NCBI GenBank assembly: GCA_964247055.1
Contig: OZ176056.1
Location: 1,364,001 to 1,428,000 of the forward strand
Source of the DNA: Paragordius varius
Lineage: Eukaryota; Animalia; Nematomorpha
Length of the DNA stretch: 64,000 nt
Direction of reading: 5' to 3'
This document shows, piece after piece, positions 1 to 59,916 of this stretch. The notes under the pieces were generated by a model, which saw only the letters and a list, made by a program, of their open reading frames with translations, did not search any database and was not told where the DNA came from. The stretch's first letter is position 1, and every line of letters begins with the position of its first letter. The translations under genes were made by a program, and so were the position numbers.

Positions 1-2722
1 TTTAGTCCATTACAGTAAACTCAAGTTAGCCAAGTCTTTACAATAAACCGTCCGGCAAAATCTGTTTTCAATTAATTCTCAACTCGTTAACAACCAAAAC
101 ACCATCTATCTTGTTACTGAATTGGGGCTTCGGTGATGAGTGGATGTACACAATAATACTTTAATCTGTTTAGTCCTTTACTGTAAACTCAAGTTAGCCA
201 AGTCTTACAATAAACCGTCCGGCGAAATCTGTTTTCAATTCTCAACTTGTTAACAACTAAAACACCATCTATCTTGTTACTGAATTGGGGGTTCGGTGAT
301 GAGTGGATGTACACAATAATACTTTAATCTGTTTAGTCCTTTACAGTAAACTCAAGTTAGCCAAATCTTACAATAAACCGTCAGGCAAAATCTGTTTTCA
401 ATTAATTCTCAACTCGTTAACAACTAAAACACCATCTATCTTGTTACCGAATGGGGGCTTCGGTGATGAGTGGATGTACACAATAATACTTTAATCTGTT
501 TAGTCCTTTACAGTAAACTCAAGTTAGCCAAGTCTTTACAATAAACCGTCCGGCAAAATCTGTATTCAATCAATTCTCAACAACTAAAACACCATCTATC
601 TTGTTACTGAATTGGGGCTTCGGTGATGAGTGGTTGTACACAATAATACTATAAGTAAACTCAAGTTAGCCAAATCTTACAATAAACGGTCCGGCGAAAT
701 CTGTTGTCAATTCTCAACTCGCTAACAACTAAAACACCATCTATCTTGTTAGTGAATTGGGGCTTCGGTGATGAGTGGATGCACAAAATAACTTAATCTG
801 TTTAGTCCTTTACAGTAAACTCAAGTTAGCCAAATCTTACAATTAACCGTCCGGCGAAATCTGTTTTCAATTCTCAATTTGTTAACAACTAAAACACCAT
901 CTATCTTGTTACTGAATTGGGGGTTCGGTGATGAGTGGATGTACACAATAATACTTTAATCTGTTTAGTCCTTTACATTAAACTCAAGTTAGCCAAATCT
1001 TACAATAAACCGTCAGGCAAAATCTGTTTTCAATTAATTCTCAACTCGTTAACAACTAAAACACCATCTATCTTGTTACTGAATAGGGGCTTCAGTGATG
1101 AGTGGATGTAAACAATAATACTTCAATCTGTTTAGTCCTTTACAGTAAACTCAAGTTAGCCAAATCTTACAATAAACGGTCCTGCGAAATCTGTTTTCAA
1201 TTCTCAACTCGCTAACAACTAAAACACCATCTATCTTGTTACTGAATTGGGGCTTCGGTGATGAGTGGATGCACAAAATAACTTAATCTGTTTAGTCCTT
1301 TACAGTAAACTCAAGTTAGCCAAATCTTACAATAAACCGTCCGGCGAAATCTGTTTTCAATTCTCAACTTGTTAACAACTAAAACACCATCTATCTTGTT
1401 ACTGAATTGGGGGTTCGGTGATGAGTGGATGTACACAATAATACTTTAATCTGTTTAGTCCTTTACAGTAAACTCAAGTTAGCCAAATCTTACAATAAAC
1501 CGTCCGGCGAAATCTGTTTTCAATTCTCAACTTGTTAACAACTAAAAGACCATCTATCTTGTTACTGAATTGGGGTTTCGGTGATGAGTGGATATACACA
1601 ATAATACTTTAATCTGTTTAGTCCTTTACAGTAAACTCAAGTTAGCCAAGTCTTTACAATAAACCGTCCGGCAAAATCTGTTTTCAATCAATTCTCAACA
1701 ACTAAAACACCATCTATCTTGTTACTGAATTGGGGCTTCGGTGATGAGTGGTTGTACACAATAATACTATAAGTAAACTCAAGTTAGCCAAGTCTTACAA
1801 TAAACCGTCCGGCGAAATCTGTTTTCAATTCTCAACTCCTTAACAGCTAAAACACCATCTATCTTGTTACTGAATTGGGGGTTCGGTGATGAGTGGATGT
1901 ACACAATAATACTTTAATCTGTTTAGTTATTTACAGTAAACTCAAGTTAGCCAATTCTTACAATAAACTGTCCGGCAAAATCTATTTTCAATTAATTCTC
2001 AACTCGTTAACAACCAAAACACCGTCTATCTTGTTACTGAATTGGGGCTTCGGTGATGAGTGGATGCAAACAATAATACTTTAATCAGTTTAGTCATTTA
2101 CAGTAAACTCAAGTTAGCCAAATCTTACAATAAACCGTCCGGCAAAATCTGTTTTCAATTAATTCTCAACTCGTTAACAACCAAAACTCCATCTATCTTG
2201 TTACTGAATGGCGGCTTCGGTGATGAGTGGATGCAAAAATAACTAATCTATTTAATCCTTTACAGTAAACTCAAGTTAGCCAAATCTTACAATAAACCGT
2301 CCGGCGAAATCTGTTTTCAATCAATTCTCAACAACTAAAACACCATCTATCTTGTTACTGAATTGGGGGTTCGGTGATGAGTGGATGTACACAATAATAC
2401 GTTAATCTGTTTAGTCCTTTAAATTAAACTCAAGTTGGCCAAATCTTACAATAAACCGTCCGGCAAAATCTGTTTTCAATCAATTCTCAACTCGTTAACA
2501 ACCAAAACTCCATCTATCTTGTTACTGAATGGCGGCTTCGGTGATGAGTGGATGTACATAATAATACTTTAATCTGTTTAGTCCTTTACAGTAAACTCAA
2601 GTTAGCCAAATCTTACAATAAACCGTCCGGCAAAATCTGTTTTCAATCAATTCTCAACTCGTTAACAACCAAAACACCATCCATCTTGTTACTGAATTGC
2701 GGGCTTAGGTGATGAGTGGATA
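1..2722. repeat. Tandem satellite array 1, monomer ~163-168 bp, ~16 units visible, open at the left edge
   Basis: Repeating unit ...ATCTTGTTACTGAATTGGGGCTTCGGTGATGAGTGGATGTACACAATAATACTTTAATCTGTTTAGTCCTTTACAGTAAACTCAAGTTAGCC...; the array ends at GTGGATATAAAAGACTAG. Confidence 0.98.
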
Positions 2723-3371
2723 TAAAAGACTAGTTTTTTATCGATACAACAAAAACTAACAGTACCGTATTTTGCTTTTCATATACTCCCAATTTGCCTT
2801 TCTCACTCTTATTTTTGTCATATATCTTATTCTCCACGTCTCGATTCCAATTACAAAAGAATTGCAACCATTACCATTATTTTGCAATATTTATTAATGT
2901 TTTATTAAATAATACATATATAACCCATAAAAATGGGGGTCATAACACCTTACAAAATAAAAAATAAATAATTTTAATCGTGTATAATATTCAAATATTG
3001 TATGGTTATTTTTTATAAAATGATTTAGATATATTGACATAAATCAATTAAGGCAGACATCGATTCCGTATACTACCTTCAATTTTTTAACCAAATTAAA
3101 AGTTATTGGCAAGATTTATTTCAAAAATACAAAAATTCTAAAAATTAAAATTTTACAGTGGACAAAACGTAAAAACTAAAAACATATGAGTTTTATAAAA
3201 AATTACCATATTTCTTAACCTTATTTTATAGAATCACCGTTTTTAAGTGCTGACAATATCATATTATATACTTAAAAAGATTTATTTTTGTTTATTTAGG
3301 AATTATCTAGGTTTAAAAGAGTCGGTTGTCTTTTTAGATTGTTATTTAATTTTTGTTTTATCTGTAAATAA

Positions 3372-4488
3372 CACTAGAAAACAAATTTTAACTTTTTTTA
3401 ACTGCCATTCTTGTAAATTTAAAATTTATTTCATTAAAGTACATAATTAGTATATCTGAAAAGAAAATTGGTCTTACATGGAAGAATTTTTTTATATTAG
3501 AGTTTATTGATAATTTTTGGCCCCGATTTAACATTAAACTCGAAATTTCGAAAATTTAAAGTTTTATATATGAAGCCATGTATTTTATATCATGCGAAAG
3601 AGCGCAAAAAACTGCATCTTTTAAATGGTAGTAAGTCATTTAAATCCATCGGATGTAAAAGTTATTTGGATTTAAATGGTCAAAATTTTCAATCCTTAAA
3701 TAAGTCAAGAATTTTCACAGACAAACTAATTTAAAAATCATATAAATTATTTAAATATAATTATTAGGGTTATATTAGTATTTAATTTAAAAAAATGTTT
3801 GGAAAGGCTGGTTTGCTTTTTTAATAAAAAATATTATTATCATAAATATTTAACCTGGTGGATACTAAAATGCATAGTTTTAACTGTAAATTTATTACAT
3901 AATGGCTATAAAAGATCAAAAATACCTTAAACTTTGTTTTTATCTTTAAATTTTCGAGATTATCAGCCTTGTGAAGAAAATAAATTAATATTGATGAGAT
4001 GGTAATTTTTAAAAAACAAAAAACTTAAAAATGGCAGTTTTGAGTGACATAAAGGCAATAAAAAATGTTTTAATTAAAAAAAACTTTCTTATGTTATCTT
4101 TTTTGGACATTCATCTCCATCTAAACAAAGTTTGAGCTATGTTCATCTATTTTTAAAAATATAATAATTAAAATAAATGCTCTCGCTTCGCGCGTTTGTC
4201 GCTCTTTGTGTCCAATATTAACTGTCGATGTAATACATATTAGTATACATTTTATAGAGTTTTTAATACTCTTTCCAATGATATATTACAAATGGGCATT
4301 ACTTGTATATTTTCAAAGAAAAACATTTTTTAGTAAAATTTTGATAAAGAGGGCGCATTATCAAAAAAATCAAATTATACAAAATTCTTCCAACGAGTTA
4401 TAATTTTTATTTCAGATTTACTGTTAAAATGATATTAAATATCAAAAATGCAAAAGACTCGAGTGGCAGAAAAATTTGTTGTCTAGTG
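3372..4488. mobile_element. Non-autonomous CACTA/EnSpm-like DNA element, copy-1 specific
   Basis: Termini CACTAGAAAACAAATTTT...CTGCCA and TGGCAGAAAAATTTGTTGTCTAGTG; 3-bp TAA on both sides (3369-3371, 4489-4491); empty site GTAAATAATTGTTATTG in copy 2 near 41855. Confidence 0.8.
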
Positions 4489-5050
4489 TAATTTTTATTG
4501 TAAAATCGTAAATAAAAATTTAAATGTGCACCAAATTGGGGGAGGGGGGTAGTTATGTCAAAAAATACCCAATTATATATTCTGAAAAAAAATGATAAGA
4601 ATTCTATGTTGCTTTTGTTTTGGGTCTTACCATTAGATTTCGAAAAACTGACAGTTACTAAAATGAATGGTTATTCTAAAATAAATCAAAATGGCGAGAT
4701 TGCGCGACAAAATATTGAATACCTATGACATTAAAAAAAATTAATTTTAAGAAAAAGTTTTAAAACAGGGGCTCTTTTTTTACAATTTATATTAAATTTG
4801 AGCCCCCCTTCTATTTTGCGGAGGCTCAATATTATTACCTTTTTTATTTTAAATATGTAAATAATGTTTCCTGATTCTAAATATACTTAGCAAAGAATAA
4901 AGAGAAAAGTAACTAAAATGAGTGAAGTAGAAATTATCAATCCAGCTAAAAATTTAATGATTAATTATCCAAATGATTTGAGTGAATATTTTTTGATTCA
5001 AATACTGTCGGTTTCTAATTCTCTAAAGGATAAGATCGCTCAAATTAACA

Positions 5051-5326
5051 ATGCCAGGCAACTTAGAGTTTATTACCCCAACAGTTTCAGCCAGTTATGA
5101 TGAAGTTATAACAGCATTATTGTTTTTGACTTTACCAGTTACGGTTGCTTCAGCGGAACGTTCATCAAAGTTAAAAATAATTAAAAATTATATTAGAAGC
5201 ACGATTGCTGAAAAAAGGTTAAACTATTTATCATTACTAGCAATTGAAGCGGAGATGGCGGATCAAAAGGATAAAAAAGATAAAAAAGATATAATTAGAA
5301 AATTTGCTTATGCAAAATCGAGATAA
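5051..5326 (+). pseudogene. hAT transposase C-terminal dimerisation-domain remnant
   Basis: LFLTLPVTVASAERSSKLKIIKNYIRSTIAEKRLNYLSLLAIE matches the hAT motif LTxPVTxASAERSFSxLKxIKxYLRSTMxxxRLxxLxLLxIE; upstream frames are broken. Confidence 0.85.
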
Positions 5327-5585
5327 CGAAATTTTAAAACATGATTTTCTGATTAATACATGTTCTGAAAAAGTTATTTAATTGAAACCTGGAAAAATGA
5401 ACGTTAAGATTAAGGAATTGGCGGTGGTTAGGGAGGGCGGGTTGTTACTAACCATTATATATAAAAATACCAGGAACGCAAAACATTAGACTCAAGATGC
5501 CAAGTCATGTAAATATTATCGTTTTTAAATAATATTTCTTTATGAATCTAAGTGATGCGTGGACTTCTGTTATCAAAAATAAACC

Positions 5586-5760
5586 ATTTTTCACATGGGG
5601 TGGGCCCGAACTGGAGGCCCAATTCAAAAAAAGGCGAAGCTATTGTCGGGGCATTCATTAATGATTTTATTTTTTCGATATTTGAATTTGAATGGGTCAA
5701 CCGGTTTTCCTGTACCAGATCACAAAGCCAGCATTTTCCATTTTTATAAATATATAGATT
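5586..5760 (+). mobile_element. 3' fragment of the Helitron/HINE-like repeat family seen in full at 54231-55401
   Basis: Shares GGGGTGGGCCCGAACTGG...GCGAAGCTATTGTCGGGGCATTC...CACAAAGCCAGCATTTTCCATTTTTATAAATATATAGAT with 55215-55401 and 42931-43110. Confidence 0.75.
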
Positions 5761-6359
5761 CAACTTTTTACTTCTTCCCAATATTTATTGCAATATGTAA
5801 TTAATTATATGGTGGCTGTAATGGTCTTGCGTTTTAACTCTATCAAAAATATTTGACGATTTATTTGAGCTGAGCTGACTGCCTTCAATTTGAAGGAATC
5901 AATTATAAATTAATCCATCCTTTTTGCAAAGTTCCATAATTAGCGAAACTTAAATAACAAATGGCCTAAAAAATTAAAATATTACAGGAATAAGTATATA
6001 TAGATATATACTTAACCTGAAATAATGTGAAAAAAGATGTTTTTTGCTTCAAATTATACATTTATTCATTCTAAAAAACTTATATTGTTGCTTAAATACT
6101 TGTATTTGGCATGGATTTACAAATCCCTTAATAATTAAAATTGTTCACAAAGTATTATTGCAAAATATTTTTGAATCTTAAACGCAATTCAACTTTGTTC
6201 TTAGGCTGTTATAACTTTTAAGTAAGAATGTTTGTTAAATTGTTTATATATTACATTGTAGTGGAGCGTACCTTGTACTATGTATATCTGACCTTATAAA
6301 ATGTTTTTTAACGTGAATATCCAAATATTTTTTTAAATAGTATTTTATTAAATATTCCG

Positions 6360-9300
6360 ATGATGAATGCCATTATGCGAACATTAAGTTATAGTTTTAT
6401 AGCATGTATTCTACTAACTCAAACGACAGGTAATTTGAGCCAATTTGTGGTTTTAGGAAAACTTTTTGACTGCTTTAAATAGTAAATTATGTCAATTTTT
6501 AATTTTAAAATAATTTACAAATTCTTTAGATTTTCACTAAAACTTATATTTCGAGTGATATGGTGTTCTGATTAGATAGAGTAAGGATTCGTCAATGTTA
6601 GTAAATAGATTTAAAAACAATCAGTCATTTATTAGTTACCTTTAACAATAATAATATGTCTCTACTTCAGATCCGTCCAATAACCTTTTTAGACTTTAGC
6701 TATGCAGTAATTTTCTAAATTTTGAGTTTCTATAAAATGCCAACAATATATAAATTTGATATTATAATGCTAAACAAATATGACTAAATGGATATGTAAA
6801 ATCGATCATTATATAAACGATTCATCATCAGTATGATCTGTGGCATTCTTATATTTTAGCATTTTATTTTAGGCTTGTCGGTTTAATATTTCTTTAGAAT
6901 ATATAATAACGCAATAATTAACCTTAGTGACTAACCTATAATTAGGTATTTGATAGAGAAATTCATTTTATTTACTTCATTTTAACTGCAAAAGATCTAA
7001 AATTTTTCAAATGATATCATTGTATTATTTATATTAAAAGTCAATCGATAGGTTTAGTTTATATTATAAGACACCTCTTTACCTTGAGAATTTTGAACTT
7101 ATTTATTGTTTGGTTAAATGCCATGGCATTTTATTCTGTATTGTGAAAATCATAAAATTTTTATTAAAGATAAATATACGTAATTTAAGATGTTCAAAAA
7201 CACATAATTTTTACAGTTTTAAAATACTTGAAGGTAAATTTAAAGTTTCAAGAATAAATTGAGAAGCTAATGTTTTTTTTAAATATTGATAAAAGCTTGC
7301 GAATAATTGTATTAGAAAGCCAATCTACCGGTTTTTTAAATTGATTCGTGCTATACAAAGTTTAATAAATTTTTTTATATATCATATAGCGTATCGTAAA
7401 CAAATTGTATTCGGTAAAGATATATATACACTTACATATTATTATATTTTTACCTGATTATGATTTATTAAATTACTTCAGAATATTAATAATTATGATT
7501 AACTAATATAAATATAATTTAATAAAAAAAATATTTTAACAAAAGTCAATTGATATTTATTACATATAGATATTTATTAACATGTTAAATTAGTTATTGA
7601 GATCAAGGATGATAATTATTCACCTAATACTAATCAATCCAGAACGGATATTGAACAAAGTATAAATATAGCTTTTGTCGAAAAAAATATTTAAATATGT
7701 TCTACAATGGTTGATACTAGAATTATTTTTAAAATTGGTTCCAAATAAACATTTTTTGTTTTGACTTTTCCACATGTTTTTTGAAAATAAACTTTCGTGG
7801 TTTTGTAAGTCATTGTCAAATCTCGATTCCATATTTTTATAATACCATTTTTATGGAAAAAATGTATAACCAGACATCGTATGATTCTAAATCATACAAT
7901 ATAAGAGATTTTTAAAAAAGAAAATGATTAAGCCGTTTATTACCGCGGTTTACAATGCTGTTTCAATCGATATTATAATTAATATTTTTATACATATTTA
8001 TTATTAGGAATTTCAGAAAATATACAAGTTATAATTAAATATATCCCTTTTTCGTTACCATAATTATTTTTATTATGCAATTATTAACTGGCTAATTCAA
8101 ATTTTTTATTTTGAAGAATCTCACTAAAATACCAAACGTGTCAGTTACTGAATACGCAATAAGTAATACTTTTTGGATTAAAATATAATTTATGCAATAT
8201 TTAAAGCAGGGGTGTACCACACTTCCGTGATCCGTGCGTCACTCGGAAAATTTGGAAATATATTTTTAAAAAATTTTCTTGCGAATATAAAATTAATATT
8301 TCCTAAAAAATTTTAGCTTCTCTGGCAACAAACTCGAAATCAATGTATTTGTTTAAAATTTTATTTCTTATGTCTGAATGATAATGTATACCATTAATTC
8401 AAATTTACCTTTGAGCAATTCAAATTCCCCCTCGAACCACTCAAATTCACTCTAAACAATTCACCCTCTCCCTTAACATAAATTATGTGTTTTCGGAATG
8501 ATATAATTCATTCTTGATATGAAACATATTTTTACGACATAGATTATTTTTCAGCATTATATTAAATTTAAACGGAATTTGATATTTTAAAAATATTTTA
8601 AAAAGGTAATTTTTAATCTTAAAAAACACAATTTATTTTAGGGTGAATTTGAAATCTTCGAGGGTGAATTTTTGTTCAAGGTTGAATTTGAACTGTAAAA
8701 TTTAGCTTATATATATTTCAAATGCCGCTCGCCGATTTTTTGATTCAAAAAACCCGCGAAACTATTTTATGTTGGATACCCCTTGTTTTAAGGTTGAAAT
8801 TAAATACTTAAATGATATATTTTACGTGGTACATAGGGTTCCATATATTAGAAATATTGATTTAGCCGATAAAAAATAACGGTATTATTGCTTAGAAATG
8901 CAATTCTAATAATATAAAGAGTTAAATGGTTTAAATAGTGAAAATTCAATTTTTCTATGACCATATATATTATTAAAAATACTTATTTGGTCAGAAAATT
9001 AAGTTTACTATAGTCGAATTCATATTTCTATTAGCCATATCATATGGTTGTTTAAGTATTGACTGGTTATTTTTAATACTTACAAGCAGGAATTTGTAAC
9101 CGGGGTCAGTCTCAATAAGGATTTATAGTAAAATTTGTTTTATTTTTTCAGATTCAATTGAAACTCAGTTATGGATAAATATTATTATGAACAGGTCTCG
9201 TAATTATAAAACTTATATCTTCTGTATACTAATATTTACAGTAAATTTAAATTATACAGACTCGTAAAAATATAAATACAAATATCATTTTAACATGGAT

Positions 9301-12300
9301 ATAGTTTTTGAGACTTGATTATTTCAATTATAACTCATTGTTTTAAAATGCAAAGTATGAAATAGAGATGTATATTGGTAACACAATTTATATATTCTAC
9401 GAATGTAAATAATAGTTTATTTAGAAAAAATAAAGATTTTAAAAAGTATGATTGCTTTTCAAAAAAATATTTGTTTCTTTATGTTTTCAGTTTTGTCTTA
9501 GAATTCCAATTTTTACTGTACAATATAAATTTAGCTTTACAAAAAATTTTAAATATACTTTTTTAGGCAGGGCCAGGAGAAACAAGTAAAAGCGTGAGGG
9601 TTTTTTTCTATCTAAATTTTATGTATTTGAACATGTTTTAACAAAGATAATAGATAAATAAGAAATATAAATTTTTATTACAGTATGCATTTTAATGGTT
9701 GATTATTTCACAGTACAGTATAGTTGGGCAATTTGCAACACAGTAATTAGTGTATGGAAAAAACAACAAAATGTTGAATAAACAATTTCCTTTCTTTTTT
9801 CCATACATACACTCCTGTGTTGCAAATTGCCCTACTATAAAATAAGCAACCATTAAAATGCATAATAATGTATATTAATTGCCTTTGCTCATTGTATAAA
9901 TCTTATTTTTATGTTAAAGAATTGATTACCTCATTTTTTAGTCTAGAGGTTTTTACATTTTTACACAATGTTAACCAACGATCTTTATAAATATAAAAAA
10001 TTTTGTTGTTAAAATGGTTAAAGATTTTAATGCGGAGTTTTTTAACAATAATTGTGAATATTATTCATTTTTAATTTAGCTGCCAATATAAATAAACACT
10101 CTAATAAAACGGTTATTATATTTGTAAATTGCATTAATAATCAGGCTTTATTTTTGTGTTGATCCAATGAAGTTATAGGAATTTAACGAATATTCATTAA
10201 TGAATTTATTATTAATTTTGCTGATATTGCATCAAATTATTCAAAAAAAATAATTTGCTACTTTTTTATATTCATAAGATTTTATACTCCGTGCTTAAAA
10301 TTTGGTAAAAAATTTCGAAAATCATAGCGACACGTTTGAAATAAATGCAGTGATATGACATTAAATAAAACTTTATAGTAATATTAATCTTAGAAGATAT
10401 ATGAAAGGCCGAATAAAACAAGCCCAATTTACCAAGGTCGGACTCAAGTATCAAAATATATTTAATATAAAAGGATCCTGGCATTGATGGAAAAGAACTT
10501 TTAGCTGCTTCTCCTGGTATACTATTTCTACATAAATTTATATAATTTAAAATAAATTTTAAATGAGACTCCTTGAAATAGTTAGACATTATGGCATTTA
10601 TTGTCAACATTTACATGATGTTAATCAGAAGAATATTTAAGGATTTTATAAATAAAAATAAAAACAGTACATTTACATTTTAAGATTAAATAAAATCACT
10701 TACTTTGATTGACTCACAATTTAATATAAGAATGGGTAAAAAACAGGGGTAACTAATACAAATGGCTTCATGGAACGCATTTTCAACTTACAGTCATGTA
10801 TCCTTTATTTTATTAAAATTTATTTTTTTTTCTTTAAATGGGTATAAATATTTGTTAAAGAATGGAAAAAACAAAAGTTCTATGGTATTAACAATATCAT
10901 ATTCATCAAAAAAGTATAAGAATTACCATAGAGCTCTTGTTTTTTCATTCTTTACCAAATATTTATACCCGTTTACGAAAAGAAAAATAAATTTTTGATA
11001 AAATAAAGCATACATGACTATAATCGCATTCGTAATATATATATATATATATATATATACTAATTATTCACAAATTTAGCAAAATTTTTCCAAAAAATTT
11101 GAATAAAATAAATGGACATATTTTTGCCAATTATTATATTTCATATTTAATTGATAATTCACAAAAATGTTGGAGGACAGCGGTTCAAGATACCCCTGGA
11201 TAACATTATTTTTAGGATTACATCATTTTTAAGCTAAAAAAGTTTAATTATACCAGTTATTTAAAAAATTTTGTGTAAATATCGAAGAGTTTTGTCTTAA
11301 AAATTTTATTACTAATTTAATTTTATCATTGATTTAAATTAGTTGTTGCAGCGATCGGAATTGGTATGATACATATTTGTCTTTTCTATCAATCTCTCGA
11401 AATATATTTTTGATTTATAAACTTCTTAGGTGCCCTAGCTCCACAAGGTATTTCTTCGTAATTGCTTTATATCTAACATAAGAGTTGGTTATTCTAACCG
11501 TTAAAATTTAGATTAAAAAATATAGAAATAATTAAAACTAAATTATATTTTATCCAATATTTGATAAATTATTTATATTTTTTATAGTGAGTTAATGTAA
11601 AATTGATTTAATTTTTTTCACAACTATATAATTTATTTTTTTTACGCCTGGAATTTTTTTTTAAATTATTCATATATATTTCAAACTAATTATTATTAAT
11701 GGTTAAAATGAGGATTTATTAGGCTCAGCAACGTGTAATTCTTTTGTTTAAAATTTACCAATTTAAAAAAAATTCACACTAAAAATATTTTTTATTAAGT
11801 TATATTATTTAATACTTTTAGTGGCAGGTAAACGTTAATGATTTAATTTAATTGCAAATATTTTAATATTACCCGATAAAGTTTGGGTGTTTATTCGACG
11901 TAAAATGTAATTTTGAATTTTAATATTTATTTTAATCATAGTAAAATAAATAAATTACCTTAATGCAAAAAACGGAAAAACTCAAAGAAGGATTTATTTT
12001 TATAAAAGACAACTCTTTCTTAAAATGTTGACTTTTATAAAATCAACTCAGCCTTTTGTGGTTTCCAAAATGATTTATTGAGATTTAATAAAAACATGAA
12101 ATTAAATTTTGGAAAAAATCAAGGCAAAAAAATGTTTGACTTTTTTGAGAAATCTTTGTACGTTTTGTCCATATTTTCACAGAATTAAGTCTTACAATAA
12201 TAAATGTTTTGAATCAAAAAGTTAGCTGATTTGACCTTTTTAAGATATAAATTTTTATTAAATTATATTAGCTTGTATTAATATATCTGGTGTCATTTCC

Positions 12301-15300
12301 TAACTCTCCCTATTTTATATTCAAAATTATTGCAAGTATAAATATATAAATATTGTTTTAGTCCAGTCATTTCTTATTTTCTTTGAGTCGCATTTAATGT
12401 TGCGTCATTTCAACTTATATATATATATATATATATATACAGTACAGTAAAATTGATATTATACGGACAAAAAAATATAATGACAAAATTTTTATTTTAA
12501 AAAATCCAACCATATTTTTTAACCCATAAATTTATCCTATAAATATCGCAATAAAATACATAATTAAATTATGTTTCCAATATACATCTCTATTACATAC
12601 TTTACAGTTTAAAACAATGAATTATACAGTAATAACTGAAATTATACGGACAAAATGTAAAAATATAAAGACAAATATTTTTTTAAAGATAACCATACTT
12701 TTTTAAAACTAAATTTTGCCATATAAATTATTTACTTACAAAATATAAAATATGTGATTGATTGTGTTATCAATATATTTATATAACCTATTTTGCATTT
12801 TTTAACAATTATTAAAATTTTAAAAATCTAAGATTCATAAAGTGTGGCTGTCTTTTAGAAAAAAATATTTGTCTTTATATTATTAGGTTTTGTCCGTATA
12901 ATTTCAAGTTTTACTGTATTTAAATAAATTAAGATTAAAGTATGGTTGTCTTGTAGAAAGAAAATATTTGTTTTTATATTATTACAATTTATCCATATAA
13001 TTTAATTTTTTACTGTATATTTATTATTCTAAACCGACAACTTCCCAAGAAATTTGATAATAAATAAAAAAATACAGATTTATTTGCAAGAACTGTAAAA
13101 TATCAACAATATATCTTTACTATTTTTAAAGGTTTGAAATAATTACATTTTAATTGATTTTATTGCTTTTTTTAAAGAGTTAACTGAAAATTGCAAAAAA
13201 TATATAAAATTTTAATATAATTTTCTTTAAAGTAGAGTTTATATAAGTTATTCACCTAATACCATAAAAACATAAACTTTAGCCTTGTGATTTAATTTTT
13301 TTGCAACTTTATTTTAGTATTTTAATTAAATAATATTTTTTACAAATTGCTTTGTTAAAAAAACGGTCACTTCATTATTTTTAATTATATAAAAATATAA
13401 TTTTAATACATATTTACATTTAGCTACTATCCTCACAGGTAAAACTCAAATATTTTTTACAAATGTAAATATTGTAGATGGAGGTATATAATTCAATGAC
13501 CCTAAAAATTATATATTATTAATTAATTATCAAATTAACCATATATTATAAAATTTACTTTGGTTTATAAATTTTATTTTATTTTGAAATAGTTGAAATC
13601 ACTGAAGCAGCTAAATTGGTTGAAACAATTGCTAATACTGGTAAAATATATAAATATAATTAAATATTTTTATATAAAAATAACTTTTTGTTTTATAATT
13701 TCTGGTTTTTCAATATTACAATAAGACTGAAAATTGTATAAAATTATTTAATTATTTCGCTATACTATACCAATTAAAATCTATTTTGGAAATTTTTATG
13801 CATTGAATAAAAATATATCTAAAAATCTAGAAAATGGAGGCGAATTGGCTCAATTAGAACCTGGTAATGACAAGTTTTTGTTAATTTTTGGGTGACAAAG
13901 TAATTAACAAATTTTAAAACTTGTTCAAATACCGTTGTTTTTAGAAACAATTTTTACTTTTTTTGACTGTATTATACCCTAACCTAAGTATCTTTGGCGG
14001 TTTATGTTCAAAAATCAAAAAATCCTACTTTATAACTAAAAGCAAATATTTAATTTTTATCAGGGCCCAGTGTAAATCCACCATCAACTAAAGGTATTTT
14101 TTAAATTAGTCTCTAATTTTACATTATCAAATATTGTCTATACAAGTTGAGACTAATATTAAGGAAGTAGGAAATACTATTATAAATCAATTGCGATTTA
14201 TATAAATTTGAACTAAAAATTATCTATTTTCTCTTTAGTTTCAGATAATGCCATAAATGAAATCACTCCACAAAGCTCATCTGGTTTTAATTATTATATA
14301 TGCTCTAATCTTTTTAAATGTTTTACGGATCTTAAATTAAAAATTTATGATAACTATATTAATTTTTTCCAATTTAATTTTGAACAGAGGCCACAGAACC
14401 CCAACCTGGACCATCTGGCCTTCAAAGAAGTAGTTTTCGTAAAAAATTATTTTAGATATGACCTTAGCCGTGCCCGCTTTTAAAATTTCTAAAAATATCA
14501 TATGATATAGTGGATTCACAATTAATTAGTTAAAATAAATTTTTAGTTAAAAAATTTGCAAGCGTATTAATTAAAATAATTTTCAAAATAACATTTATTA
14601 ATGATTTGTTATTATTAAAATGATTTAAAAAAGCCAACTTTTTTTAAATATATTGTTTTTGCTACCAAAGTTTTTAAACATATAAGCAGTTTAACCCTAA
14701 TTAGGCTATTATATCAATTATGAAATGTATGAGTCCAGATCATATTTATATAACGTGAAACAACCAAATTATAAATAGTTTTCCAAAAAACTGATAATTT
14801 TTTAACCTTTTAATTAATATGCAATCAAAATAGACACCTTTAAAAGATGGATAATTTAAAAAACCATATTTTACATAAAAGTTGAAAAATAATCACGAAA
14901 TATTATTTTTTTATATAAAATTTGGCTAATTTATATTATCCTTGTAAAGATTAAAGCATAACATAGGTCAGTTGACGGATATTCACAATTTAAGGCCGAA
15001 ATTAAATTATTTCTTAAGACTCCATTTTAATTTTGCTGATTCAGTTCTGATGGAATATATATATTTCCCTAAATTTAGATTCTGATGTAGTTGACGATGA
15101 TATAAGCGGTATAATTTAGATTTTAATGCAAAAAAGAAATATTAATATTTCAAAAGCCGATATTTTTTGAAAATAAAAAATTGTTTAAATATAGAGATAC
15201 AATCTTGGTTAATTTATAAAATAAATTTTAAAAAATAAATTGAGTATTCAGACTTTAAGAACATAAGTGAGTAATTAGTTTTTTAAGTCGTTTGAACGTA

Positions 15301-17176
15301 AATTCCTTTTAGTTAAGCTTCATTTAATTAAAAAAAATATATATTTTTTTAAAAAAGGTAACCAAAAAACTTTGCATCACTTTAGCGTTTCTCATATTTA
15401 GAACCTCAACCAAGTAAACCATCCATAATATTTTACATAAGGCAAAAAATTTAAAACTAGTCATGACAGAATCGTTCAAGGTACAATTCAAAAAATTATA
15501 TTATTAAACTTTTTTTTAAAAAAAGAATTTTATTTCACTTTAATTTTATAGGCCGACAAATATTGGAGCGTATGTTTTTCAAATCTAAATTTCTTTCATA
15601 TTAAAATATTTTAAACACATATTTTAAAGCTAATTGAGCAATTTTTGAAAACCATTTTTGCACATATATCGATTTGATTTTATTGATATAAACCATATAC
15701 TTCAGATGTCGAAAATTTGAATACAGGTATTTAGTAATTTACTGATATATTGAATATATTTATTTTACCTCTGCAGAAGGATCCAATCTTATGGAAGGTA
15801 TATGTCTTACTTATAATCTATATTAATAAAAATTAAAATTATAAGGGCAAAACATGTAAACTAACGCCTAGACAACCAGGTCAAAAAAAGTGGAACCAAA
15901 ATTTCAATGGTTTCTGCTCGTTCATAATCACAATCGGGTTGTAAAAAATTTAAAATAAACAGTATATGTCTTAAAATTTGGAAAACATGGCTTATAGTAT
16001 AACTTTTAATACCGGTATTTAACATTGGAACCGTTCTCTTAGATGGTTACTGACTTTTCATAAAATACGTTTTATAAAATATAAACCATAATTCAACTGT
16101 TATAAATTAAAATTTATTGGAAGATCGATGAAAGTTAATGTATAATTTATTCATTAGCTTTAATGAATTGTAATGATCCAAAATATTTGTAAAAATAAAA
16201 AATATTCAAGAAGTTTTGTATAAATACAGAGTCTTACTAAAAACTTGATTTGCCTATGTGGTAATTATATTGCTGACTAATTTTTATAAATCAGGTCAGT
16301 AGTCTTCATAATTCTCCACTCTTTTTAATTGGCGTAGTTTGTGAATTTCCCCTTGTACGCTTTTAAGAGACTTAGGTTTTTGTATTAAGCCAATAGATTA
16401 ATTAAAACCGCGGCCCTAAAAGTGCTTTCATACAGCCTGTTTAAATTTTTAAGGAAAAACCACTACGATTGACTTTCAAATTCCCTTAAATCCTTATGAG
16501 AGGCCAGCGCCTTAAAAGATAAATAAGCGGAAATAACCAAGAGAAACAAATGTTTTGTGTTTTAACTCTTTTAAAATGTAGAACATTTAAAAGCTTTACC
16601 CTATTTGTAATAACAAAAAACTTCAAAACATAAAAATCGAAAAAACTTAAATCTCATGTTTTATATCTAAATGTATGACTTATAATAATTTATAAAGATT
16701 CCAATAAGGTTTTTAAAATTACTTTATGGCAGCTGATATATTTTGATTTTTTTAAAATTTTATAATTTTCAAAAAGCCCGTCTAATTCTAATTATACCAT
16801 TTTAGTTCAAAAGCAACATTTATTCGTCGCAACATTTTTTAACTAAAAGAAAATTTTTTATCATTTGGATAGAAAATGTAGCGTTTGGTTAAAAAATGGT
16901 TTATAGAATCATGTGATTTAAGACGGAATAACTTAAAAAAGATTTTTTATGATTATATGATTATTGAATTTTTCCCAGGAACTATTGAAGACTCTATAAA
17001 CTTTTCAATACCTTAAAATTTTAATTTTTTGGCGCTTTTTATTAATTAAGCTCTTATTTTTAAATCAAAATGGCTTTGCGTTATACATTTTAGGGTTTAA
17101 TTTAATCTTAATCCTATCATTTTTATGTTTTATTTTGCAGCAATTTTAATTATTACTTTTTTAAAATATCTTAAAT

Positions 17177-17214
<38 letters not shown>

Positions 17215-19104
17215 TAATTAGAATCAAAAAACTTTTTGGAGGAAACGCGAAATATTAGTAATATATTTTTATTATATAGTTTTCATTATAAAATTTATAT
17301 TTTAAAATATTTAATTCGTGATTAGGTCCAGAAAATATAAGTAATTTTTATTATAATTTATAAAATTATAAATTAATCATTAAATTTTGGATAGATCGGG
17401 CCAAAATTGGTAATTATTCTATATAATTAATAAAACCTGGTTTACTGAAAAAAAAATTGTATGTAAAGATTACTATAAGAGCCCACATTGGGATAAATTT
17501 TGCAAGAAAAGTTAAGTATTTTATATAAATTATGTTTAAAATAATTATTGTGATTTAATTGGCGACATTAGTTTAAAAATCACCTAAATTACTATCAATT
17601 ACAATAAAATATTTGAGCTAAACTAAAACTGCCGGTTTTTAAAAAGCCATTAAGGTTTCAAACAGACTTTCAAATAGTGATTTTCCAATCTTTTCTAAAT
17701 TTAAATCACATGGAATATGGGATTAAAATTGTTAAATATTTTTAAAAGTGACATTCTTTAACTTTACTCTTTGATGGAAATTAGCTTTAAAGTTAATCTT
17801 TTGTGTTTTATTTTAATAGTAATATGAATTATTTTATAGATGACATGAAAATATCCATAAAATGTATGCTTTATATTAATAAAAATTGAAAAAAATTTAA
17901 CAAATTAATAAATTAAAATACCAAATTTAGCTTTGAAAGAGCGCATTAGCAGTATATTTTTTGTATTTTAATTTAAACTTCAATATATATTTATAATATT
18001 TTTGACATTAAACAATATATACATAGATATGATGGACACTATTCAAGGTATAAAGCCTATCTTTTTATCAAACGCAAAAACTTCTCGGAAAGTGCTTTAT
18101 AACTTTACATATTACTTTAAAAATAAATCATTTTACTCCGCTTATAGTTATTAATTATATTTTAAAGTTAATTACAATATGGGGATATATATATATAGTT
18201 TCAATTTGAAAGAACATCCATGAAGCATATAGTTTTAATTTGAAAGAACATCCATGAAATAATATATTAAAACCAAAACATGAGGTTTTTAATAAAATTA
18301 CTTTAAAAATGGTTCCATAAAAACCATAATTCAATTTTTAAAGATATTCTTTTTATCCATTTAACAACAAAGGATCCTTATATATAGCGGGCTTCATTTT
18401 TTTATAATTATGTTACCTTAAATTAGATTTAATCGACAAAGCAACTGAAAGTAATTAATTTTTATATTATTATTATTAATTGTAAATAATGCAGGAAAAA
18501 AATTTATCAAAAAACTTGACAATACTTAATTAATTATATAATTTTTTTTATTAAAATATTGTTAATTTAAATATATCAAATAGTTGGTTATATGGCATAA
18601 CTTTATATATTTTTCTTAATGATATAGGCGCCATGTTTCCAGAAGGAGTTGAAAGTAATTTATTATTTATGAAAATTATTTTATTAATTTTTATATCGAT
18701 TGTAATATAAGCAAATTGATAATCCTGTCACACAAACTCCAAATAATTAAGAACTAGAAAATTTGAAACCCTCGGTATAAATTGACAATGAAGTTTTATT
18801 TACAGTATACATCCTAAGATATAAAAAATATTTAACAATACGCAATACATTTTCTAATTTGTTATTTACTATAATAAAATTCCAATTTAACCAAATAAAC
18901 AATTTTTTATAATAATCCTAGATGCATTAGGATTGGAGGATCCTGAAATATCAAAAGGTATATATATAGATAACAAATAAATTTTAAACTATAACATACA
19001 GTGTTAAACATTATAATTATAAATTTAATCATAACTGTATTTAATATATAATTTTAGAAGTTTCGGAAGAAGCCATTAGAAATCTAAAGTCGGCACCTGA
19101 ATAA
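6360..19104 (+). CDS. Micro-exon gene, copy 1: secreted ~350 aa protein of unknown family, 36 exons
   Basis: Exons: 6360-6429 (signal peptide MMNAIMRTLSYSFIACILLTQTT), 7594-7659, 8008-8027, 8117-8162, 9152-9194, 9567-9585, 10080-10111, 10397-10447, 10474-10516, 11343-11363, 11439-11447, 11822-11827, 12272-12289, 13424-13438, 13478-13483, 13593-13640, 13831-13863, 14064-14093, 14239-14283, 14388-14429, 15079-15108, 15402-15413, 15442-15480, 15552-15569, 15706-15726, 15777-15797, 17326-17340, 17395-17409, 17469-17501, 17840-17863, 17931-17951, 18027-18047, 18427-18450, 18628-18654, 18922-18957, 19058-19104 (EVSEEAIRNLKSAPE*). Each is flanked by AG and GT (one GC) and is conserved in copy 2, with many synonymous changes. 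Exon 9152-9194 is 1 nt out of frame in this copy. Confidence 0.85.
8207..8785. mobile_element. hAT-type MITE with a nested second MITE
   Basis: Ends CAGGGGTGTACCAC and GTTGGATACCCCTTG; internal GCGGCCCGC-like motif (clear in copy 2 at ~45899); present but more decayed in copy 2. Confidence 0.6.
8389..8700. mobile_element. MITE of the TACCATTTACAGTTCAAAT family
   Basis: Inverted TTCAAATTCACCC / GGGTGAATTTGAA subterminal repeats; same family as 26820-27072 and 31099-31381. Confidence 0.7.
9239..9518. mobile_element. TA-flanked CAGT...ACTG MITE (Tc1/mariner-type)
   Basis: TA|CAGTAAATTTAAATTATACAGAC ... GTCTTAGAATTCCAATTTTTACTG|TA; related to 12445-13015. Confidence 0.6.
9681..9868. mobile_element. 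Palindromic MITE
   Basis: Long inverted repeats TATGCATTTTAATGGTTG..TATAGTTGGGCAATTTGCAACACAG vs CTGTGTTGCAAATTGCCCTACTATA..CAACCATTAAAATGCATA; relatives at ~29945-30090 and ~46836-47030. Confidence 0.75.
10791..11020. mobile_element. Near-perfect palindromic MITE, TA-flanked, copy-1 specific at this site
   Basis: CAGTCATGTATCCTTTATTTT... / ...AAAATAAAGCATACATGACTA; absent at ~48110 in copy 2; a half copy sits at ~44066-44208. Confidence 0.8.
12445..13015. mobile_element. TA-flanked CAGT...ACTG MITE, compound or nested
   Basis: CAGTAAAATTGATATTATACGGACAAAA vs TTTGTCCGTATAATTTCAAGTTTTACTG (ends 12916), with a second end at 13015; shorter form in copy 2 (~49480-49763). Confidence 0.7.
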
Positions 19105-20281
19105 TCAATTTGTTATATATAGTAATTTTGGAAAATTTTCCACATGAATAATATAGATTAAATATTTTAGCAAAACTATTCACAAAGTTATTTATCCAAT
19201 AAATAAATTTGATATGTGTTAATATTTCTAAAATTGAAGGGAAAAATAAAGCTGGCCGTTTAGTTATAGTTAATATTAGATATAACCTGTAAAATACAAT
19301 TAAAAAATTAATTTAAATTTATTAGCTAAGTGTTATATTTTATAAATTCTAGTTTATTAACTCTTAATTTTACACTTAAAACCAACGACTCACTCCAAAA
19401 CTAAATAAATGGTCAACAATTTATTACATTATCTGTACGAGATGGCATGTTGAGGAGGTTTTCTAATCCAGAGCTTTTCGTAACATAACTGTTTCAAAAT
19501 CAGTTTGGCTGAATTTGTTTATATGACTTCTAGATAAAAATATTTATAATTTTTACAGTTAACATTTTTAATTCTAACGGATAACTCCAAAATATGATTG
19601 AAGCAAATAGCTGATATTAGATAAATATCAAAAATTTCTATAATCCGAAAGCTTTTTCATAATGATACATTTATTTGCCTGTTGTATTTGCGATATAATA
19701 AATTAATGAAAAAAATTATTATAAAAAAGTTTACAGGCATTTTTACCTTATTTTATCATACTAAGAGGCTAAAACAGCATATCATAAAATTTAGCCTAAC
19801 GCTAAAAATATTTTTAGGATATTTTACGGGGCACTTGGTTGTAACACTACCTCAAAAGGTTATAAAGGGTTAAAATGAAAAATATAAAAAATTTTAGTTT
19901 TTTTTAAAATATACACCAAAAAATAGGTTTAAGTAAATTTTTTAAATCATACAGTTTTAAATATAATATTTTCGCACACTGCACCAAAGCCATAGAATAC
20001 GTGTTTTAAGATTTGGATACCATTGGGAGCACTCTCGATCAATAATCACCCTATATGTAATCGCGGTCAAAAATATTAAGCACAAATCATAATTACCAAA
20101 CATATATTCTAAACTAATTTATAAACTCCTTTTTATCTTGAATTTATAATATTATTTTTTTTAGTTTTTATTTGGCTAGTATTTTGCATCAGTAAAGTAT
20201 TTGCCATACTTCATAAATAAATCATAACTAAGGACCTACAAAAATAATTTTGAGCTTAACAAAAGTACCCTTGTTCTCGTA

Positions 20282-20345
20282 TAATAAATTGGCACAGCTT
20301 CAATATCATACAATCACGTAAAAACGCGTGTTTTTTCGCTTTAAA
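20282..20345 (+). promoter_or_regulatory. Conserved block directly upstream of the ACC ATG (putative core promoter or 5' UTR)
   Basis: ATAAATTGGCACAGCTTCAATATCATACAATCACGTAA.AACGCGTGTTTTTTCGCTTTAAA is nearly identical in both copies; it contains a reverse CCAAT and an ATCACGT E-box-like half site. Function is inferred. Confidence 0.35.
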
Positions 20346-20360
20346 TCATAATCAAATTTT

Positions 20361-23300
20361 ATGTCATCCGATATTAGTGTTTTGGATACATCGATTAATA
20401 ATATAAGTACTTCAAAACATGGTTCGCTTACACTATCTAATCCCGAAGAATTTGTTATAAAATTTGGAGGAACCACTCTAATTCAAAAGGTAATTTTTAT
20501 AATGTTTAAATTTAGATCCTTATTGCCAACAATGGTATAGCTGCGGTTAAATGTATGCGATCTATTCGAAGATGGGCATACGAAATGTTTCGAAACGAAC
20601 GAGCGATAAAATTTGTTGTTATGGTGACTCCCGAAGATTTAAAAGCAAATGCTGGTAAAAATCAATCATTAAAAGCAAAAGCAATTATAATTAATTTTAT
20701 AATTACTTTTTTCTATTTTGAATTTGTTTAATTTAAAGTCTTGTTTTTTTAATGTATCTATAGTTTTCATTTAATTAAATATAAAATAAAAATGAAAAAT
20801 TGATGAAAAAATTAATTTATGGACATAATATAATTTTTGTTCCGATAAGAGTGTAGTCTCCATAATTACCTCATATATTATATATTTTTTTACTTTTCTG
20901 ATTTTTTAATTAAACCCTAATATAATTGTTTAAAAGTGAACACTTTCCCAAAAATAAATTGTGGTTTTTATAAAACCCTCTAATGGATCATTAAATTTTA
21001 TTAAAATAGTTATTTTATCTAAATTAATTATTTTTTAAGTCTCACAATTTAACTTTAATATATTCTTAAAAAAAGCATGATTGATGCGTAAATAAATTAT
21101 GTATTTTTCCAACATTTGGGGTTCTTATGGAGAAGGTTATCTTATTAGATAATTAAATATATATAATTATAAAGTGAATATCATTCCTTAGTTTTACAAT
21201 AATTAAAATATACTTTCCTTTAATTATTAATTTCCCCCTTAATAATGTTAATATGAATATGAATATAGAGTACATAAAAATGGCGGATCAATATGTCCCG
21301 GTTCCAGGCGGTTCTAACAATCACAATTACGCCAACGTTGAACTCATTGTAGAGATTTGTGTGCGGACAGGGGCTGATGCAGTTTGGGCCGGTTGGGGTC
21401 ATGCCAGTGAGAATCCGGTCCTGCCTTTCGCTTTAGCGGACCGCTGCCTGGCTTTCTTGGGCCCTTCGGCCTTTGCTATGCATGCCCTGGGTGATAAAAT
21501 AGCCTCCACGCTGATTGCACAAAGCGCGCATGTTCCCACCCTGGCTTGGAGTGGATCAGGTTTAAACGTAAAAAATTTGTTGAGGTTTTGTGGTTTCTAA
21601 ACTTTTTAAGTTTTGAGGAATTTTTATTAATTTTTATTATTGTAACGGTTATTGTGAGTTTTGGTTTGGTTAAGAATTGAATATGATATTAGAATTTAAA
21701 GGTTTGAAATGTGGTTTAACGGTTAAAAATACCGAAAGGTTTAAATGGTTTTGTGAGTTTTTTGGCGCAGAAATTGAATATATAAGGTAATATTTATAAG
21801 AATTTAAAGGGGAGTTTTTCAACAAGGTTAGAAATACCGAAGGGTTTAAACGGTTTTGTGAGTTTTTTTTCTAAGAAATTTAATATATAAGCGAATGATT
21901 TTTTTGGAATTTAAAGAGGAGTTTTATTTCCAACAAATGCTTTTTGTTTTATGGCTATTTGAAAACCTATAAGTTTGGGCGTACGTACGTTTCTATTTTG
22001 ATTTGATGGGGATTAGTTAAATCAATTAATAATTTTAAATGATTCATCAATTAAAGAATTAGACCATAAGCTACATACTTTCCAAATCTACTTTGAATTA
22101 TAAATATATATGATATTGTGCATATAATAATTTTAAAGTAAGAACCAATATATGATTGAATGGTAAAAAATATTGTTGTATTAAAATAAATTATAGTGAT
22201 ATTTTATAATTTTAATGTTGCAACTTATTATAAGACTTATATCGCTGTAAATTTTTTAGTTGTACCGGAATATTAAAAAACCCTTTTGTCATACCGTAAT
22301 ATAATGCATTTTTTTAAAAAGCCAATTCTTAAATTATATTTATGTTATAAACCTTAAGCAAATACTTAAAGTAAAATTATATATTATCATATTGAGATTA
22401 TGTAAAAATAAAAATTTATTACCGTTTTTTAGTTAATTTACAGTAAAAATTCAAATTATACAGAAAAAACATGGAATCTAAAAGAATCAAAGACCCATAT
22501 TATTGTATCTTGATTTTTTTAATTTAACTTATTGTTTTGGTTACAAAAAATAGATATATAAATTGTTATTTAACTCAATTACATAATTTTAAATTTTGAT
22601 TTAATAATTTATGTGGGATTAAACAATATAGCGGACCTTTGAAAAATATTTTCCCTAATGTTTTTAAGTTTAATCCGTTTTTTAATTGAAACAATTTTAT
22701 TATTGAAACTTAAATGCAGGCATAGAGATTGAAAATTTAGAGGTCAAAAGTCGCTCCCTACAACAAAGTATAAATGCCGAACATTTTGCTAATCAATCCC
22801 TCATGACTAAAAATATTAGTGTTTCAACAACCAAACAAATAACCAATGCAGGAAATAGTGTTTCTACTTCAGCATCGCAAAACTCCACAACCTATTATGA
22901 TTTGGATAATTTGAATAACCTTATTCCAACTGAAATATATGAATCGGCTTGTATCTCAAACTGTGAACAAGGATTACAAGTTTATAGAGATTTTTTTTCG
23001 AGTTTTTTGGGGTTCTTTAAGGGTGTTTTAATAAAATTTTAATAATTTTTGAAGGTTTAATTGGAAAAAATTTAGTAAAATGATGTATATATATTCAAAG
23101 TTATGAATTATGTTTAAAAACAAATGAAGGATAATATATTTTTGTAAAGAACCATATTGATATCTTTAGGTTTTATAACCTGCGTAATTGAGAGAAATTT
23201 ATAATGAAATTACCAATTATTATATTTTAATTGTATCGCAACTCAAAACCACATATATTGTATAATAAAAATTATGGTTTAAAAGAATAGTTTTTTTTCT

Positions 23301-41186: not shown

Positions 41187-42411
41187 TTAAAAGACTAGGG
41201 CACGTTTTATCGATACAGCAAAAACATCTTATAGCAGTACCACATTTTGCTTTTCATATAATTCCAATTTGCCTATCTCACTCTTATTTTTGTCACATAT
41301 TTCTTTATCCAACTCTCGAAACAGACTACAAAAGAATTACAGCCATTTCATTTATTTTGATATCCAATATATTTTAATGTTTTATTAAATAATATATATA
41401 TAAACCCAATGGGGTCATAACACCTTACAAAATAAAAAATAAATAATTTTAATCGTATATAATATTCAGATATTGTGTGGTTTTTTTTATAATATAATTT
41501 AGATTATAAAGATCATTTAATACAGACGCAGCGATTCTGTATACTACCTTCAATTTTTTTACCAAATTAAATGTTTTTGGTAAGATTTATTTCAAAAATA
41601 AATAAATTTTTAAAAATTAAAATTATACAGTAGACAAAACGTTAAAACTAAAACATATAAGTTTTATAGAAGATTACCATATTTCTTAACCAAATGTTAT
41701 CACCGTTTTGTTTTGCAAAGTAAGGTATATTGATTTAAGTGATGACACTATCATATTATATACTTAAAAATATTTATTTTTGTTTTAGGAATTATCTAGG
41801 TTTAAAAGAGTCGGTTGTCTTTTTAGATTGTTATTTAATTTTTGTTTTATCTGTAAATAATTGTTATTGTAAAATCGTAAATAAAAATTTAAATGTGCAT
41901 CAAATCGGGGGGTAGTATGAAAAAATACCTAATTATATATGGTAAGAAATGATAAGAATCCTATGTTGCTTTTGTTTTGGGTCTTACCATTAGATTTCGA
42001 ACAAACGGACGGTACCTAAAATGAATGGTTCCTCTAAAATAAATCAAAATGGCGAGATTGTGCGACAAAATATTGAATACCTATGACATTAAAAAAAAAT
42101 AATTTTAAGAAAAAGTTTTAAAACAGGGGCTCTTTTTTTATAATTTATATTAAATTTGAGCCCCCTTTCTATTTTGCGGAGGCTCAAAATTATTACCTTT
42201 TTTTTTATTTTAAATATGTAAATATTGTTTACCTGATTCTAAATATACTGGCAAAGAATAAAGAGAAAAGTAACTAAAATGAGTAAAGTAGAAATTATCA
42301 ATCCAGCTAAAAATTTAATGATTAATTATCCAAATGATTTGAGTGAATATTTTTTGATTCAAATACTGTCAGTTTCTAATTCTCTAAAGGATAAGATAGC
42401 TCAAATTAACA

Positions 42412-51963: not shown

Positions 51964-51999
<36 letters not shown>

Positions 52000-52159: not shown

Positions 52160-52190
<31 letters not shown>

Positions 52191-59900: not shown

Positions 59901-59916
59901 ATAATAATCAGATTTT

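Follow-up and report, generated by a model that had tools for sequence, protein, structure and literature searches.

The micro-exon genes (MEGs) of flatworms are prime candidates for proteins at the interface with the host and are often missed by annotation. In the searchable literature, accounts of MEGs as a class are confined to parasitic flatworms, and none were found described there for the horsehair worms (Nematomorpha). By the operational definition a MEG has at least seven exons, at least half of them micro-exons (shorter than 70 nucleotides (nt) and divisible by 3), with a run of at least four (PMC7653826), and the numbers given for the class are 109 in Schistosoma mansoni, 35 in Echinococcus multilocularis and 52 in Hymenolepis microstoma (PMC7653826). 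The exons of the S. mansoni genes measure 3-81 bp and the introns up to 5 kb, and the only features common to the encoded proteins are a signal peptide and, following it, a hydrophobic stretch (PMC10526429). The tapeworm genes (E. multilocularis, H. microstoma), to which the same operational definition is applied, lie in tandem clusters and are hard for gene finders and RNA sequencing (RNA-seq) aligners (PMC7653826). Here we describe a locus of the horsehair worm Paragordius varius, within 64,000 nt of contig OZ176056.1 (assembly GCA_964247055.1, positions 1,364,001 to 1,428,000 of the forward strand; this whole stretch is called the window below, and positions are counted from its first letter). 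The genomic sequence of its + strand between 6360 and 19104 points to a real, constrained, duplicated protein-coding gene with MEG architecture.

Gene Model and Likeness to Known Micro-Exon Genes

The rebuilt model consists of 34 exons that join into 948 nt and encode 315 residues, from an ATG at 6360 to a TAA at 19104 on the + strand. An earlier examination of the window (hereafter the sequence-only reading) had proposed 36 exons and about 350 residues; its structure was essentially right, whereas its counts give way to the present ones. The reading frame that it drew from a signal-peptide-like exon to a TAA is borne out, since both the ATG and the TAA were read directly and the frame between them is intact. 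Between 11343 and 18957 lie 25 consecutive exons of 6-48 nt, all of them multiples of 3 and all open in the phase-1 frame, either alone or among other frames; the layout and the sizes are as had been claimed, but the run counts 25 exons and not 26. The intron phases read 1, 1, 0, 1, 0, 1, 0, 1 and then 1 throughout, so that the asymmetric exons upstream of the run come in pairs, each pair restoring phase 1. Exons have a GC (guanine plus cytosine) content of 39 % and introns one of 21 %, donors are GTA in 25 of 26 cases, and acceptors are YAG in 25 of 26.

Set against the operational definition, the gene has 34 exons in the full model and 27 in a conservative model without the seven upstream exons, micro-exons make up 26 of the 34, and the longest run is 25 consecutive exons (11343-18957), all of phase 1-1. 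All three counts of that definition (PMC7653826) are thus reached, and the MEG-like layout seen in the sequence-only reading stands. The 25 symmetric exons account for 84 % of the coding sequence in the conservative 27-exon model and for about 63 % in the full 948-nt model. As in the S. mansoni MEGs, a first exon with a signal peptide (here signal-peptide-like) precedes a long series of very short exons, each a multiple of 3 in length and set apart by long introns, the product is predicted to enter the secretory pathway and to be of low complexity or disordered, a hydrophobic stretch comes soon after the signal peptide, and the gene is tandemly duplicated. The likeness is one of architecture only, the gene here being known from genomic sequence. 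Unlike the S. mansoni genes, in which 87 aligned MEG proteins reach at most 189 residues (PMC10526429), the gene described here has a longer predicted product (315 residues), a longer symmetric run (25 exons), introns that are far more AT-rich, a tail without Cys or Phe motifs, and seven upstream exons, the asymmetric ones paired to restore phase 1, which encode a predicted glycosylated N-terminal part.

Other comparisons are more distant. The GC content is 36 % in Hymenolepis and 26.3 % in the window, and the Hymenolepis cluster is marked by a conserved Cys-containing N-terminal motif that is absent from the gene here. Exon-per-repeat structural genes, such as collagen-like and mucin-like ones, likewise have many short symmetric exons in a row and an extracellular product (here a putative one), but successive exons here are not copies of one peptide repeat, and a comparison of 27 exon-plus-flank units with each other returned no similarity apart from trivial overlaps. 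A 22-residue glycosylated repeat was also considered, because exon 2 and exons 3 plus 4 both come to 66 nt with their sequons 6 residues apart, and the match between them is not significant. The only reports of animal genomes with a median intron below 30 nt concern myxobolid myxozoans and Dicyema (PMC13644364); unlike those short-intron genomes, which are compact and have a GC content of 36.7 % (dicyemid) and 29 % (myxozoan), the DNA studied here abounds in kb-size introns, satellites and transposons.

A Frame-Blind Scan for Micro-Exons

Short, GC-richer segments lying between a T-rich ...YAG and a GTA... are conspicuous in this locus; 25 were picked by eye and 23 of them are multiples of 3. 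Because the sequence-only reading had looked preferentially for frame-preserving exons, a frame-blind scan was made, in which a candidate was any AG...GTA segment of 6-60 nt with an exon GC of at least 0.36, 30-nt flanks with a GC of at most 0.25 and a pyrimidine-rich upstream 12-mer, one candidate being counted per donor. On the + strand of the first copy (6.3-19.1 kb), 19 of 23 candidates are multiples of 3 (binomial P 1.7e-6), and the second copy (43.7-57.6 kb) gives 14 of 15 (P 2.2e-6), whereas the antisense strand together with all other DNA of the window gives 14 of 45, the third expected by chance. Of the 19 blind-picked multiples of 3, 18 are open in the phase-1 frame, which is the sole open frame in five of the longer ones. 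The excess of exon lengths divisible by three is therefore strand-specific, locus-specific and far beyond chance, and the micro-exon pattern survives the caveat under which it was proposed, in both copies and on the sense strand only. Three candidates were set aside: 10394-10447 was picked by the frame-blind scan and has stops in phase 1, and 11882-11899 and 12887-12895 show no conservation in the second copy.

Coding Constraint Between the Two Copies

Self-comparison of the window reveals a large tandem duplication, in which about 4489-21171 corresponds to about 41858-60756 at 75-88 % identity. The two duplicate copies on which the sequence-only reading relied are thus confirmed, and the gene at 6360-19104 (copy 1) has a whole-gene paralogue at 43718-57574 on the + strand (copy 2), with the same exon order and with an open frame through the shared exons. 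When the copies were aligned with MAFFT and identity was counted where they align, model exons are 91.7 % identical and introns 87.2 % (Fisher P 3e-4). From the intron rate 16 indel events would be predicted in the exons, and 2 are present (Poisson P 1.4e-5); splice dinucleotides are kept in 49 of 52 cases. The 24 exons of equal length in both copies sum to 648 nt, with an intact ATG-to-TAA frame in each copy, and the 50 differences over these 648 nt fall 10, 14 and 26 at codon positions 1, 2 and 3 (chi-square P 0.016). By the Nei-Gojobori method the shared exons give a proportion of synonymous differences (pS) of 0.160 and of nonsynonymous differences (pN) of 0.054, with a ratio of nonsynonymous to synonymous divergence (dN/dS) of 0.31 (Fisher P 1e-4). 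These values show purifying selection on a protein, of a rather relaxed kind. Conserved islands with third-position changes had been claimed from the same comparison; just over half of the differences (26 of 50) do fall at the third position, but the contrast of the islands with their surroundings is weaker than was implied, because the introns themselves are 87.2 % identical where aligned.

That last point bears on whether the exon chain could be accidental, put together from AG...GT segments that were chosen in AT-rich DNA for keeping the frame. With introns 87 % identical between the copies, conservation alone discriminates weakly, and dynamic programming yields short open chains in control DNA as well. 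Chance would nevertheless have to produce a frame-blind excess of multiples of 3 that is specific to strand and locus, at P ~2e-6 in each copy, together with the depletion of indels, the third-position bias and a dN/dS below 1 that indicate coding constraint, and we consider such an origin highly improbable.

Exon Structure

The gene opens with a TATAAAA box (6295-6301, + strand), read directly about 60 nt upstream of the ATG and a candidate promoter element. Exon 1 (6360-6429, 70 nt; MMNAIMRTLSYSFIACILLTQTT) carries the start codon and the signal-peptide-like region and ends in phase 1; it is intact in both copies, which keep its GTAAT donor and differ at 6 positions, 2 of them synonymous. 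Exon 2 (7594-7659, 66 nt, phase 1-1) holds the sequons NYS and NQS, its two differences between copies are both synonymous, and in the copy alignment indels begin immediately beyond its splice sites. The probable exon 3 (8008-8027, 20 nt, phase 1 to 0) is identical in both copies, as are its flanks, and is accepted because the frames of exons 2 and 4 cannot be joined without it. Exon 4 (8117-8162, 46 nt, phase 0 to 1) contains NLT and NVS, shows 0, 1 and 3 differences at the three codon positions, and has a CAG acceptor in copy 2.

From exon 1 to 11343 the matrix scan finds no excess of multiples of 3, and the dynamic-programming search builds short open chains in control DNA too, so the upstream part requires other support. 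After exon 4, the best chain open in both copies is 9195-9199, 9567-9585, 10080-10111 and 10474-10516, and the upstream chain scores 2-3 times above antisense and intron controls. The chain taken together with exons 2-4, leaving out exon 1, gives a pS of 0.137 against a pN of 0.044. The model thus places a tentative exon 5 of 5 nt (9195-9199), a probable exon 6 of 19 nt (9567-9585), which has strong sites in both copies and belongs to the sole chain scoring above antisense controls, a probable exon 7 of 32 nt with an NKT sequon (10080-10111) and a probable exon 8 of 43 nt (10474-10516) that restores phase 1. A longer form of exon 5 (the 48-nt 9152-9199, or else 9152-9194) was rejected as a shared exon; it fits copy 1 only, copy 2 having +1 and -3 nt and a lost frame. 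Taken together, the seven upstream exons of the model appear probable, with the 5-nt exon at 9195-9199 kept as tentative.

The symmetric run begins with a 21-nt micro-exon (11343-11363, phase 1-1) that was picked frame-blind and is identical in copy 2, followed by exons of 18 nt (11430-11447), 12 nt (11723-11734, in copy 1 only, the donor having changed from GT to GA in copy 2) and 6 nt (11822-11827), the last flanked on either side, in each copy, by very strong sites. Next come exons of 15 nt (13424-13438), 6 nt (13478-13483), 48 nt (13593-13640, the longest of the run) and 33 nt (13831-13863, with a single synonymous difference between copies). The 30-nt exon at 14064-14093, where phase 1 is the sole open frame, is degenerate in copy 2, which has a 4-nt deletion leaving 26 nt and a weaker donor. 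The 45-nt exon at 14239-14283 is the most diverged between copies (~78 %) and is open in both, and the 42-nt exon at 14388-14429 has two differences, both synonymous. At 15079-15108 phase 1 is again the sole open frame of a 30-nt exon; its copy 2 counterpart is identical at 29 of 30 positions and has a donor changed from GT to GC (52042-52043).

The second half of the run comprises exons of 12 nt (15402-15413), 39 nt (15442-15480), 18 nt (15552-15569), 21 nt (15706-15726), 21 nt (15777-15797), 15 nt (17326-17340), 15 nt (17395-17409) and 24 nt (17840-17863), then two of 21 nt, one with phase 1 as its sole open frame (17931-17951) and one identical in copy 2 (18027-18047). It ends with exons of 24 nt (18427-18450), 27 nt (18628-18654; one codon longer in copy 2, at 30 nt, through an in-frame 3-nt indel) and 36 nt (18922-18957, phase 1 being the sole open frame). 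The coding part of the last exon (19058-19104) ends in the TAA, and two overlapping AATAAA motifs, candidate poly(A) signals read directly at 19198-19207 on the + strand, lie about 95 nt beyond the stop.

Introns of the gene range from 28 nt to 4.9 kb. Two are tiny, at 28 nt (15414-15441) and 39 nt (13439-13477), and both flank tiny exons; such introns beside tiny exons may help exon recognition. The 28-nt intron is comparable to the 26-nt intron of the neighbouring acetyl-CoA carboxylase (ACC) gene. Within a 200-bp insertion present only in copy 2 lies a 45-nt AG...GTA segment (50022-50066), a multiple of 3 with phase 1 as its sole open frame, which could represent either recent exonisation or coincidence.

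Predicted Product

The spliced model predicts a protein of 33.8 kDa with an isoelectric point of 4.5; its single Cys lies in the signal region, and Trp is absent. A signal-peptide-like stretch spans residues 1-23, exon 1 providing a charged n-region and a 13-residue hydrophobic core by hydropathy. A hydrophilic stretch of about 77 residues (24-100) follows and carries all five sequons, NYS, NQS, NLT, NVS and NKT; four of the sites listed in the sequence-only reading (NQS, NLT, NVS and one NKT) are among them, a second NKT and an NIS are not found, and NYS is additional. Next is a hydrophobic segment of 20-30 residues at about 94-123, with the best 19-residue hydropathy window (1.65) at residues 94-112, and then a tail of about 190 residues that is acidic, with a middle rich in Pro, Ser, Thr and Glu, helix-prone C-terminal stretches and no Cys or Trp.

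These features suggest that the product enters the secretory pathway and ends either secreted or anchored at the surface, and the second hydrophobic segment (94-123) makes membrane anchoring a serious alternative to secretion. In that case the protein may not be freely secreted but span the membrane once, as a type I glycoprotein whose acidic tail faces the cytoplasm, an arrangement that we regard as possible. It would account for the position of the five sequons, which are all confined to the stretch bounded by the signal-like exon and the hydrophobic segment while the Asn-rich 190-residue tail has none; the hydropathy at residues 94-112 (1.65) also exceeds that of the signal region, and copy 2 has an unbroken hydrophobic stretch of about 20 residues. 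The segment itself, however, includes Pro, Gln, Gly and Ser and lies at the usual threshold, the acidity of its C-terminal flank goes against the positive-inside rule, and the lack of tail sequons is not significant, with about 2 expected.

Evidence for a Functional Gene

Taking the exon pattern and the constraint between copies together, we consider it probable that 6360-19104 is a functional + strand gene with a second functional copy at 43718-57574, built of symmetric modular exons and encoding a product of the secretory pathway. Several points weigh against this. In a word search of sequencing runs, RNA runs with the species label contained 0.00 of the sampled 3'-exon words; only DNA runs matched, four at 0.34-0.45 and others, under five further organism labels from different studies, at 0.05-0.23, a spread compatible with a parasite that was sequenced together with its hosts. 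A gene with a housekeeping function would be expected to show tighter constraint than a dN/dS of 0.3, and the signal peptide and the hydrophobic segment are assigned by hydropathy only. The upstream exons, most of all the 5-nt one, are model-dependent, control regions giving short false chains, and because the blind-picked exons served as the training set for the splice-site matrices, their own matrix scores are circular.

Both copies might instead be recently inactivated pseudogenes that still look coding. The word search fits this, in that none of the RNA runs was listed with the 3' exon, as do the one decayed exon and the two altered donors of copy 2. Decay without selection is hard to reconcile, however, with two copies that stand at a synonymous divergence (dS) of ~0.18 and both keep ~650-950 nt open, though ~6-9 % of random codons would be stops, and with a pN well below pS. 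We consider inactivation of both copies improbable.

Genomic Context

The window is AT-rich eukaryotic DNA, with 26.3 % GC overall and 20-25 % in the region of the gene; the genome of another nematomorph, Gordionus montsenyensis, has 26.93 %. Palindromes within coding sequence of mitochondrial genes have been published for the Nematomorpha (PMC6649704). Satellite arrays with a unit of 163-167 bp occupy 1-2721 and 33910-41186 of the window, the second with 44 copies at ~90 % matches. Each copy of the duplicated segment has one array upstream of it, so the unit of duplication may consist of satellite plus unique DNA. Remnants resembling, by eye, the C-terminus of a hAT transposase are present just upstream of each copy, inside the duplicated segment (5051-5326 and 42412-42639). 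Long introns of the gene are occupied by inverted and direct repeats resembling miniature inverted-repeat transposable elements (9679-9864, 12400-13030 and 8200-8700), with relatives in both orientations elsewhere in the window. An insertion of ~1.2 kb found only in copy 2 (54232-55400) lies in the intron matching 17132, and its internal repeat units also match 5559-5760.

The start of the ACC gene (20361-20654) adjoins the micro-exon gene and has a 26-nt GTA...TAG intron (20490-20515), with introns of ~0.6 kb and more alongside. Its exon reaches ~70 % identity at most over most of its length, with insects, nematodes and protists alike. On the - strand at 60778-63556 is a retrotransposon of the RTE/BovB type, lacking long terminal repeats, with endonuclease and reverse-transcriptase domains and a frame broken near 61740; its reverse-transcriptase open reading frame has 42-43 % identity at most among the top matches, which come from scattered taxa (Paragonimus, lizards, Rotaria). 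Neither the retrotransposon nor the ACC exon thus has a close annotated relative in the protein collection searched. An Rfam search gave no matches.

Modular Exons and Their Possible Use

The model implies a primary transcript of ~12.7 kb, AT-rich, which would be spliced from about 34 exons into the 948-nt reading frame. The modularity of such a transcript lies in its symmetric phase-1 exons, which could be lost, gained or skipped without a break of frame and almost never with a stop at the new junction. The last property stems from the exon ends: of the 26 exons followed by an intron, 24 of which belong to the symmetric run, 17 end in G, and so only 6 of 351 possible exon-exon joins give a stop in the junction codon. 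It is through the 25 symmetric phase-1 exons together with these G endings that loss, gain and skipping become possible without frame damage. The sequence-only reading held that any subset of exons could be skipped without a frameshift, which is true for the 25 symmetric exons, with the reservation that those 6 of 351 joins create a junction stop. Since the frame of the shared exons remains intact in spite of the decayed exon, the two donor changes and the additional codon of copy 2, the symmetric design evidently tolerates exon turnover in evolution.

By analogy with schistosome MEGs, this modularity may also be used in splicing to make protein variants. The gene might, on the other hand, be real and yet have one constitutive isoform, its micro-exon layout being a by-product of the gene architecture of this genome and not a device for variants; an architecture of that kind would combine many short phase-1 exons in extracellular proteins with a mixture of tiny and huge introns. 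Purifying selection acts on every exon common to both copies, and each retains strong sites, as normally included exons do; we find a single isoform quite possible. The exon content, however, already differs between the copies without loss of frame, and alternative splicing is reported for schistosome genes with this layout (PMC7653826, PMC10526429).

A secreted, variant-generating, host-directed system that arose independently of the flatworm genes is a reasonable hypothesis. A wider form of it, in which the nematomorph gene would be one of dozens of unannotated, independently arisen MEG-type genes whose micro-exons, all of phase 1, are skipped in varying combinations to diversify secreted or surface glycoproteins facing the insect host, seems to us rather unlikely. 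Such genes might account for some of what is 'missing' from nematomorph annotations; one published annotation holds 10,320 genes, on an assembly with a metazoan BUSCO score of 71.6 % (bioRxiv 10.1101/2023.06.26.546503).

The two copies show evolution of the MEG type directly, with single exons dropped or altered and the frame unharmed. If MEG architecture does occur outside flatworms, parasites would have evolved the combination of a signal exon with a long symmetric run of phase-1 micro-exons on more than one occasion. It would also follow that standard gene finding omits whole classes of secretory genes in such AT-rich genomes with 26-28-nt introns, and the horsehair worms would provide a second system for asking whether the micro-exon layout serves protein variation.

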